Positions 32,901-35,900 of a stretch of DNA of 64,000 nt are shown piece after piece. How positions within the stretch are numbered: the first letter of the stretch is position 1; every line of letters starts with the position of its first letter. The notes below the pieces were generated by a model. It searched no databases. It was not told the origin of the DNA and was given only the letters and a program-made list of their open reading frames with translations. The stretch covers positions 281,496,414 through 281,560,413 of the forward strand of contig NC_058134.1 of the NCBI RefSeq assembly GCF_016433145.1, given 5' to 3'. The DNA comes from Gracilinanus agilis. Its lineage: Eukaryota. The position numbers and the translations under genes were made by a program.

Positions 32901-35900
32901 TTCTAAGAGTTCCATGCTTGGGCCGGGGGACCCCTGGCTCCCCAGACTCTTATCCCGAGCGCCTTCCCGGATCTCATTCCCTGAGGGGAGCCGGCCGATC
33001 GCCTTAGGCGGGATTTGACTTTACATACACCAGCGGCTCCGAAGCCCCGCCCCATCCCCCTCCGCGTTCTCGTCCCCTCAAAGCGGCTAAAAGAGACTCA
33101 GACAGGGCATCCAAGGCGCTTTCCGGGATGGAGGCCACGGAGGGCCGGCGTAGCCTCCCTTTTTCAGGCTGCTCGGCCGCTCCTCCCTCACCGAGCTGGA
33201 CGGGCTTGGTCCCCTCTGGCACTGTAATGCCGGCCGCTTCCCGAGCGCCAGGCCCAGGGCAGCAGGCAGCTGGCCATCCCGGAGCCTCCTCGAGTGCTAA
33301 TCCGGCCGCGGACACTGGCGGGCTGCGCCGCGTGGGCCTGGAAGTCCCGCAAGCCTTTCGCCTCGCTTCTCCTCCGCTGTCCAGCAACCCCATTCTCTCC
33401 GCCACGGGGTCCCAAAGACGCGGGGCGGGGCGGGGCGGGGCGGGGCGAGGGGAAGCCGCACTCCAACAGCCCCAAAGTGCCGCCTCCTTTCGTACTCTGC
33501 CACTCCCTGCCTCGGGTACACCCGGCGGGGGAATCATTTTTCCTGCATCGCCAACATCGAATTATTCCACACTTGCCCATGTGATGAGCGTGTTTGCTTT
33601 CTTTTAGCTTTCCTACGAATGGATTTGAGCCCTTTTTAAATTGGGTGCTGAGTTTCTTCTTTTGGAAAGTCTGTCCTTAGCTCCGAACCACTTATCTGTT
33701 GAGAAATGGCTCATTATTAGATTCATATCCATTGCTGATAGTTGGTTGTAAATACGATGTTTCTAAAAGATAGCTCGTGCTGTTTTTCCCGTTCTGTACC
33801 TTTTCTTCTCAGAAGCAGTGTGACAGTATAAGATCCGAGTTCGAATCCTGTCTCTAACCTATGGGGGTGTCTCAGACAACGCCAAGGCTCCAAGCTGCAA
33901 AGGCGTGCTGGGTGCTCTGATAGAGGGACTTGCCCTCACCCAGAATTCCTTTCACCAACGAAATCGCGAAGTTAACAAAAATCTTATTCTAGCTGTTCTT
34001 TCTTTTCTTGATGTCACAGCTTTTACGTTTACATCACCAAAGTAGTCCAGTTTGCCTTTTCCGATATTCTCGGAGGGCACTCGCCATCCACAGTTGGGAA
34101 CAATCTAACTTCTATTCTCTTTTTTAATGATTCTCAAGTATTCAACTCACTTATCCATTTGGAACTTAAAGCTGTGTCTGTTGCAAGCTTTCTTGTCCAA
34201 ATGTGACCCAGTTTTCCCAGCAGGGCTTGCTTTAGACTTCTTTCCCCAGTGTCTTTTCATCAGTTTATAAAGACTATGCTACTGTACTGATTTTTAAGAC
34301 TTGCTTACCTAAACCATTCCACTGAGTAATTTGTTTTTATTTATTACCAGATAGCTTAATAATTACTGCTTTAAAATTTGAGTTCAATTCCTTTGTTCCA
34401 ATTTTTAAAAATTTTCTTAGGTATTCTTGACTTTTTATTCTTCCATATTCCATTTTAGTATTTTGTCTGTCTCTGAAAGTATATGCTTGGTAATTTGATA
34501 TTTAGTGGTTGCTAAATCTTGTCCTATCTCCAGAGTATCTCTTCCATACAGCCCCTTTCTCTCTACTTAACATGGTCATCACCTTAGTTTTGGCTCTCAT
34601 TTCCTCTTACCTGGCCTATTTTAATTCTTTTTTATTCTGAACTTAACATACCAAATAAAGTTAGTGTTTCCATATTCATAAGAGAAAAAAGGGTTGAAAT
34701 ATAAAACTATAAACCTCTATTATGTACAGCTTCCTTTTATTTTGGAAAATATATAAATTCAAGATGTAACTTGCAAAGTCTTGCCTGGACTGTTGCAAAT
34801 TGCTTTTTAGTTGATCTCCCAGCTCTAGACCATCCTCCAAGGTGGCTTCCTATTGCTTCAAGGTCCAAATAGAAACTGGTCTATTAAACATATAAAGATT
34901 TTCTTATTGTCCCCATGATTTGAATTGTGACTGACTCATTTTGGGGGATGTGATTTGCTTATGCATTTTTAGTTCTTTTTTAAGGATCTATAACGGATAT
35001 AATAATCCCGTCTTTTGTCCACATTTGTTTGTAAGTTCTTTGTGCCCTAGCATATGACCGAGTTTTGTGTAAATACTGTAAGAGCCTAAGAAATGTTCAT
35101 TTTTAAAGGGTCTGACTCAGAAATATCTACAGGTATGCCAAATCAATTTTTCTAACATTTTGTCCAAGTCTATAATTTCTTCTTTCTGTTGGATTGCTCA
35201 CACAGAGAACATTATTGCTTTCTAAAATGTCTAGGTCTTTTATTATTTGATAGCTTTTGCTTTAAGAATTTAGTGGCTGCATTCAGGGTACATATAGTTA
35301 ATGTTAATATTTTTTCATTCTCTAGAATGCTTTTAATTATTTAGCTTAATTTTGGAGGCTCTAAATTGTATGTTTGCTATTGCTTACCCAAAATCATAAC
35401 TGCAAATCCTGCTTTTAAAAATCTATCTGGGGGGCAGCTGGGTGACTCAGTAGGTTAGGAGCCAAGCCTACAGATGGGAGGCCCTGGGTTCAAATCTGGC
35501 TTCAGATCTTTCCTAGCTGTGTGACCCTGGGCAAGTCACTTAACCCTCATTACCTAGCCCTTACTGCTCTTCTGCCTCGGAACCAATACCCAGTAGTGAT
35601 TCTAAGATGGAAGGTAAGGGCTTAAAATAAACTAAATAAATAAATAAAATAAAAATCTAGCTGAAGAATCCCAGCCTTTTACTTTGAGTCTGCATAAGTC
35701 TCTATGCTTTAAATATGTAAGTATCAAATTATTAGGTTTTATTTTCTAATCTATTCAGCATTTAGATTCCTTTTTATTGGTATGTTCCGTCCATGATCAT
35801 TTAAGGGTACTGTTGTTACGACAGATTTACCTCCATTAGATCCTTTGATGTTATTCCTGGCCCTCCCTCCTTTATATGTGTATAGTGCCAGACTGCTATT

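Follow-up and report, generated by a model that had tools for sequence, protein, structure and literature searches.

Location and composition of the island

The stretch of DNA considered here, 64,000 nucleotides of the Gracilinanus agilis genome (contig NC_058134.1, positions 281,496,414 to 281,560,413 of the forward strand; referred to as the window, to which all coordinates apply unless another locus is named), carries the advillin gene AVIL, whose exons lie on the plus strand from ~23136 to 43914. One intron of this gene, which is ~8.1 kb long and follows the 11th mappable coding exon, consistent with the name intron 12, harbours a CpG island for which two Australian marsupials have no counterpart at this site. 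The coordinates of the island, of its parts and of its surroundings are collected in Table 1.

The CpG enrichment of this region is far beyond chance. The original prediction had noticed ~57 CpG in ~620 nucleotides (nt) within the intron, and our recount gave exactly this number of CpG in 621 nt. Length, GC content and the observed/expected (o/e) ratio of CpG lie above the thresholds of Gardiner-Garden & Frommer (at least 200 bp, GC at least 0.50, CpG o/e at least 0.60) and also above those of Takai & Jones (at least 500 bp, 0.55 and 0.65, respectively), while the window as a whole has a GC content of 0.44 and a CpG o/e of only 0.21. Moreover, nowhere in the 64 kb is there a longer run of CpG-island-like 200-nt windows than in this region. 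A single further sustained stretch of this kind, 58101-58600, can be assigned to the TSFM promoter as it lies directly upstream of the minus-strand exon that encodes the N-terminus of EF-Ts (57683-57886). Inside the AVIL island the o/e of TG+CA is 0.86, i.e. the products of CpG deamination have not accumulated, and thus the CpG of the island is not decaying. Gene calls at the AVIL loci of Monodelphis, koala and dunnart comprise AVIL and TSFM only, in agreement with the earlier statement that no known gene accounts for the island. It is thus a genuine orphan CpG island located outside annotated promoters.

Table 1. Position of the CpG island in AVIL, its components and the adjoining sequence features in the window.
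Feature	Position	Strand	Remarks
AVIL exon upstream of host intron	30102-30260	+	
MIR-like short interspersed element (SINE)	32644-32811		just left of the island, outside it; at least 15 related copies in the window
Left shore	32912-32961		orthologous to koala, identity 0.66; window G/C vs koala A/T 12, reverse 1
CpG island	32940-33560		621 nt, GC 0.673, 57 CpG, CpG o/e 0.82
Island core	32962-33478		517 bp, GC 0.68; no detectable homology to koala or dunnart DNA between the same anchors
Open reading frame (ORF) with ATG, 177 amino acids (aa)	33004-33537	-	contains the 129-aa frame (ATG 33393, stop 33006-33004); judged non-coding
Second GC box	33044-33067	-	GGGGCGGGG at 33053, inverted relative to the array
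5' splice-site-like TCG/GTGAGG	33186-33194	-	exon end 33192; first such site downstream of the array
(GGGGC)5 / (GCGGG)5.6 array	33420-33447	+	four overlapping GGGGCGGGG GC boxes; potential G-quadruplex
Right shore	33479-33569		orthologous to dunnart and koala; G/C-favouring differences 28 vs 5
Right shore, count against dunnart	33470-33569		window G/C vs dunnart A/T 28, reverse 5
Next 100 nt, count against dunnart			window G/C vs dunnart A/T 17, reverse 5
Flank further out, count against dunnart			window G/C vs dunnart A/T ~2:1
Ancient shared intron DNA	33530-35428	-	aligns to dunnart (69%) and koala; weakly reads as C-terminal part of L1 ORF2
AVIL exon downstream of host intron	38354-38539	+	

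A non-homologous core between orthologous shores

Orthologues were reached via an alignment of five amphibian and lungfish advillins with the AVIL exons of the window, entered as separate rows, and a subsequent profile search, which listed the advillins of koala, fat-tailed dunnart, tammar wallaby and Monodelphis. AVIL exon 13, searched against a representative library, found only distant full-length villins. The DNA comparison was made with the AVIL loci of koala and fat-tailed dunnart, where intron 12 covers positions 12792-23236 and 12568-20302 of the respective locus. Neither of these loci contains a CpG-island-like 200-nt window anywhere, and consequently there is no island at the orthologous position in koala or dunnart. 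The AVIL island is therefore an evolutionary gain or the result of a replacement of intron DNA, not a conserved promoter, and it is very probably a real lineage-specific island.

The intron DNA around the island can be traced in both species. In blastn searches intron 12 of the window is collinear with the koala and the dunnart intron on both sides of the island: the chain of koala matches reaches window position 32562 and restarts at 33530, and at 33530 the dunnart chain restarts as well, extending to 35428 at 69% identity. A finer alignment places the ends of the alignable DNA at ~32961 on the left, beyond which the identity to koala drops to 0.31, and at ~33479 on the right. Between these anchors koala and dunnart each have ~655 bp of AT-rich DNA (GC 0.34 and 0.30, respectively), and slightly wider orthologous cuts contain 4 CpG in koala and 1 in dunnart.

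Global alignment of the core with the koala or the dunnart segment was no better than alignment with shuffled sequences (z-scores of -1.5 and -0.3, respectively), and homology was also missing when the sequences were written in the purine/pyrimidine (R/Y) or the amino/keto (M/K) alphabet. For comparison, GC enrichment in situ was simulated starting from the koala sequence, into which 28% changes and 3% insertions or deletions (indels) were introduced before A/T was changed to G/C until a GC content of 0.69 was reached. Such sequences still gave a z-score of ~25 (minimum 20), and this signal was lost only when ~70% of the sites were randomised and 10% indels were added. As the observed values are far from the simulated ones, simple in-place GC enrichment is rejected for the core, which, judged by these alignments, is replaced or completely turned-over DNA. 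A MAFFT alignment had given the impression that the whole island corresponds to the koala/dunnart sequence, with G/C in place of A/T; the shuffle tests rejected this for the core and uphold it for the shores only.

In the two shores, where the DNA is orthologous, A/T has been shifted to G/C (Table 1), and the changes between A/T and G/C include sites outside CpG. We read this pattern as evidence against a fresh insertion. It suggests that a process favouring G/C has long been active around the island, be it protection from methylation alone or such protection combined with GC-biased gene conversion.

The right flank may also tell what stood at this site before. With the window's own L1 copy (51960-52650, plus strand) as internal reference, two collinear minus-strand matches were obtained in the koala locus, with E-values of 0.013 (17017-16913) and 0.13 (16759-16733), which fall in the shared right flank and the koala-specific segment, and the window itself gave a weaker L1 match at 33559-33518. 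Stop-free pieces of the flank found nothing in Pfam or PDB, and neither did a tblastn search with one L1 piece of the window. The L1 matches weakly suggest an ancestral state in which the tail of an old L1 ORF2 extended across the site, a part of this tail having later been overwritten in the opossum lineage. The shared L1-like flank has a history of its own in koala, where it contains a SINE (koala locus 17058-17195) and more inserted DNA (17044-17698), both of which are missing from the window and from dunnart. Elsewhere in the window, pieces of the C-terminal part of L1 ORF2 at 51579-52650 and 50946-51149 (both plus strand) are fairly well preserved, with frame breaks and one inserted stretch. 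Within the AVIL intron, positions 35508-35548 belong to SINE-like DNA.

Coding potential, repeats and RNA genes

On the minus strand, the original prediction had described an ATG at 33393 in a strong Kozak context (A at -3, G at +4), a splice donor at 33192/33191 and an unspliced frame of 129 aa that ends at 33006-33004, and on rereading all of these were as claimed. It had offered a small protein as one reading of this frame and a chance product of GC-rich DNA as another, and it is the latter that agrees with our analysis. Overlapping ORFs of 177, 159, 130, 96 and 74 aa occur in five of the six frames, i.e. on both strands, and among 1000 dinucleotide-preserving shuffles of 32800-33700 an ATG ORF of at least 129 aa is present in 18%. 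The GC content of the three codon positions of the ORF (GC1 0.72, GC2 0.69, GC3 0.65) decreases from the first to the third, so that the third-position excess is absent.

Database searches point in the same direction. Seven ORFs of the island have no exact copy among ~15 billion proteins and 153 billion gene positions, and the island ORFs belong to no Pfam or PHROG family. The minus-strand ORF has no neighbour in the protein atlas, and a large word search with the 177-aa minus frame yielded 2732 candidates sharing words with it, of which none reached an E-value of 0.01; the other frames were covered by Pfam and by the search for exact copies. The 129/177-aa ORF is almost certainly non-coding, a by-product of the GC-rich sequence. 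That it is instead a young lineage-specific small protein is extremely improbable in our view, in spite of the good Kozak context, the MGxxxS start, the donor-like site 67 codons later and the fact that an ORF of at least 177 aa is found in only 3.9% of the shuffles: apart from the codon-position pattern, the abundance of ORFs and the failure of all searches, the underlying DNA is missing from koala and dunnart, so that no constraint is demonstrable.

The island also corresponds to no local repeat and no known RNA gene. No second copy of it was found in the 64-kb window, the koala locus or the dunnart locus, and at its borders a poly(A) tail and terminal repeats are absent, the 5-nt ACTCT being all that resembles a target-site duplication. 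The repeats inside the island are confined to the GC-box array and a short inverted pair of GC boxes. A scan of 32300-34300 against Rfam gave no match at E-values up to 1, and no tRNA was detected.

Promoter-like motifs and possible direction of transcription

The array, which the original prediction had given as (GGGGC)5 at 33422-33446 with four Sp/KLF boxes, was found again together with all four GGGGCGGGG matches, which start at 33422, 33427, 33432 and 33437 on the plus strand. The second GC box contributes a fifth match, and GC boxes are thus present at both ends of the island. Together with zero matches to TATAWA, these five Sp1/KLF-type boxes give the island the basic features of a TATA-less CpG-island promoter.

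The two strands differ in what follows the array. On the minus strand, donor-like sites are found at 33192 and 31996, the first AATAAA/ATTAAA occurs only at 30973, and the sequence is free of poly(A) signals for 2.4 kb. On the plus strand, there are zero donor-like sites within 2 kb, and poly(A) signals are located at 34654 and 34883. Additionally, seen from the array, most of the island extends in the downstream direction of the minus strand. An asymmetry of U1 sites and poly(A) signals separates the productive from the abortive directions of promoters. As the layout of donors and poly(A) signals fits this asymmetry, the minus strand, i.e. the direction antisense to AVIL, is mildly favoured as the better-laid-out one, on the basis of very few sites. 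The original prediction of a TATA-less promoter for an AVIL-antisense RNA or a small protein thus keeps its first half, as the missing TATA box, the GC boxes and the minus-strand layout are in line with it, but has to give up the small protein, which has no homologue and an ORF of chance length.

Possible nature and origin of the island

Based on these findings we consider it somewhat better than an even bet that the region is an orphan CpG island of the American-opossum lineage that is unmethylated in the germ line and serves as a TATA-less initiation site or as a regulatory element. The sequence of events might have been as follows. About 0.5 kb of GC-rich DNA would have come to lie where AVIL intron 12 of koala and dunnart consists of AT-rich DNA, probably a derivative of L1, and the island would by now be old enough to have drawn the adjoining orthologous DNA towards G/C. 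It would be unmethylated in the germ line, since the shores are G/C-shifted and CpG decay is absent, and by analogy with other orphan islands it may be bound by factors of the CxxC/Sp1 type. It could then act as a TATA-less start site or regulatory element, with productive transcription, if any, running antisense to AVIL, as the layout mildly favours. The island itself, its absence from the orthologous site in koala and dunnart, the G/C shift of its shores and the lack of coding signals are observed here, whereas its hypomethylation in the germ line, its activity as promoter or enhancer and its preferred strand are inferred. We rate the chances that transcription starts or active chromatin forms at the island in at least one tissue as evenly balanced, and a stable spliced antisense RNA arising from it as rather doubtful.

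Several points weigh against this interpretation. A consensus scan of the island gave no match for ETS, NRF1, YY1, CRE, CCAAT or TATA, and the single CCAAT match, at 33644, lies outside; further housekeeping motifs (ETS, NRF1, YY1, CRE, NFY) are, however, no strict requirement for CpG-island promoters. There is no sharp switch of GC skew across the island. A check of public sequencing runs with sampled words of the island returned zero RNA runs, a weak negative, as many runs lie outside the index; one run (3.2 Gb, 2021, kind unstated) contains all sampled words and probably represents assembly DNA. The Gracilinanus agilis genome paper (2021) describes short-insert DNA as well as RNA-seq from kidney, muscle and liver (PMC8390783), the latter belonging to BioProject PRJNA565840. 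The polarity of the change is read from the weak L1 matches mentioned above rather than from an outgroup, and the richness in CpG might also be maintained by GC-biased gene conversion at a site that plays no part as a promoter. Finally, the island, known here by its sequence, is a plausible rather than an established promoter.

Orphan islands provide the closest parallels. About half of the mammalian CpG islands are orphans, many of which initiate transcription (Illingworth et al. 2010, PMC2944787), and about a quarter are intragenic and can affect the host mRNA (PMC8873577). Like these, the AVIL island has the composition of a CpG island, is far from annotated promoters, is located inside a host gene, and is TATA-less with GC boxes (PMC2944787; PMC8873577). 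In contrast to it, the islands of PMC2944787 are defined by CXXC affinity capture, H3K4me3 and RNA polymerase II, and many of the orphans among them are conserved between human and mouse, whereas the AVIL island is not common to koala or dunnart. The turnover of orphan islands between species is also extensive, and at those restricted to one species an enrichment for species-specific H3K4me3 and H3K27ac is seen (PMC11170920). The AVIL island resembles the latter in being present in one lineage and lacking at the orthologous site elsewhere. However, in the example of PMC11170920 the species without island fall below the CpG o/e threshold at an alignable site, whereas at AVIL the 517-bp core is unalignable and only the shores can be aligned. 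Thus, the one less usual detail of the AVIL island, as far as the alignments tell, is the non-homologous core between G/C-shifted orthologous shores, and the gain of the island would have entailed that the DNA itself was replaced or underwent runaway turnover.

A different origin is conceivable, in which GC-biased gene conversion, acting at a recombination hot spot of long standing, produced the GC-rich tract and has maintained it. The tract would then have no promoter or regulatory role, its richness in CpG being a side effect. GC-biased conversion at CpG islands occurs in species without full PRDM9, e.g. in dog and birds. The sole marsupial PRDM9 named in a study on this protein, that of Sarcophilus harrisii, is without the KRAB domain, and promoter-like features are described in its abstract as the second way of targeting recombination (PMC5519329). 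By extension from this loss, an extension that is our own, we infer that gene conversion may contribute at marsupial islands. As expected of such tracts in species without full PRDM9 (PMC5519329 for the domain loss), the skew from A/T to G/C at AVIL is localised and climbs towards the GC peak of the core on both sides, at non-CpG sites too, and both the thin grammar of promoter motifs and the failure to find an RNA run containing the island would suit a tract without function. Yet conversion acts on the DNA that is present, and in-situ enrichment was rejected for the core, so that its lack of homology is unexplained by conversion alone, in which the AVIL site differs from conversion tracts. 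Moreover, a CpG o/e of 0.82 without excess of TG/CA normally needs protection from methylation. We therefore regard conversion as the sole cause as rather unlikely; it overlaps with the interpretation as an unmethylated orphan island in that such islands could themselves be hot spots.

The sharp drops of identity at 32961/32962 and ~33478 and the missing homology of the core between them would also be compatible with a young insertion of foreign GC-rich DNA that may be methylated and not yet decayed, e.g. a long terminal repeat, the 5' untranslated region of a long interspersed element, a retrocopied 5' exon or an ectopically duplicated promoter. Nevertheless, this is improbable, since neither a second copy in the window or the koala and dunnart loci nor a poly(A) tail nor a duplication longer than ACTCT was found, no frame tested has a family or homologue, and the G/C-shifted shores argue for age. 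In addition, an insertion should add length, but the 517-bp core replaces ~655 bp, i.e. a matching deletion would be needed as well. More improbable still is an internal sense promoter from which an N-terminally truncated advillin is made from exons 13-19. CpG islands usually fire both ways and in-frame AVIL exons lie downstream on the plus strand, but over 2 kb this strand lacks a donor-like site, it carries two poly(A) signals within 1.5 kb, and for a plus-strand start the bulk of the island would lie upstream of the GC-box array. Furthermore, the listed Monodelphis advillins have 868, 819, 787 and 756 aa with no short one among them, although these form one 90% cluster, outside of which a much shorter isoform would fall.

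A bolder version of the orphan-island interpretation would be that the new GC-rich DNA in intron 12 of the didelphid AVIL gene made a promoter from scratch, from which an antisense RNA peculiar to the lineage is transcribed and spliced with 33192 as donor. This RNA would modulate AVIL or start a de novo gene. Such modulation may occur via transcriptional interference, methylation of the intron or premature polyadenylation. We consider this scenario improbable; if true, it would represent a dated and anatomically clear promoter birth atop an old L1 remnant.

Orphan islands and their turnover are already well documented, and the AVIL island changes no picture. It may, however, serve as a tidy marsupial example of how an island originates, as the anchors remain readable 50-100 bp from the core, the adjoining DNA shows a gradient from A/T to G/C, and the core appears fully replaced. 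If RNA or chromatin activity were shown, the island would be a dated regulatory innovation inside the gene of an actin regulator of sensory neurons; if it were inactive, it would illustrate that sequences of the CpG-island type can emerge and be retained where no obvious gene is present.

Advillin and other genes in the window

The advillin encoded by the exons in the window differs from the Monodelphis domestica protein at several residues per exon. In the Monodelphis advillin X2 (756 aa), the 49 residues by which X1 is extended at its N-terminus are missing, and the exon that matches 41424-41615 is skipped. X3 has the same length as X2, and no listed protein starts in intron 12.

Upstream of AVIL, an assembly gap of 325 N (21215-21539) separates the first AVIL exons from CTDSP2. 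A mir-26 precursor at 13146-13224 on the plus strand (Rfam RF00244, 76.5 bits) is expected for miR-26a-2, which resides in an intron of CTDSP2, and CTDSP2 is therefore located on the plus strand. TSFM is encoded on the minus strand and is convergent with AVIL.

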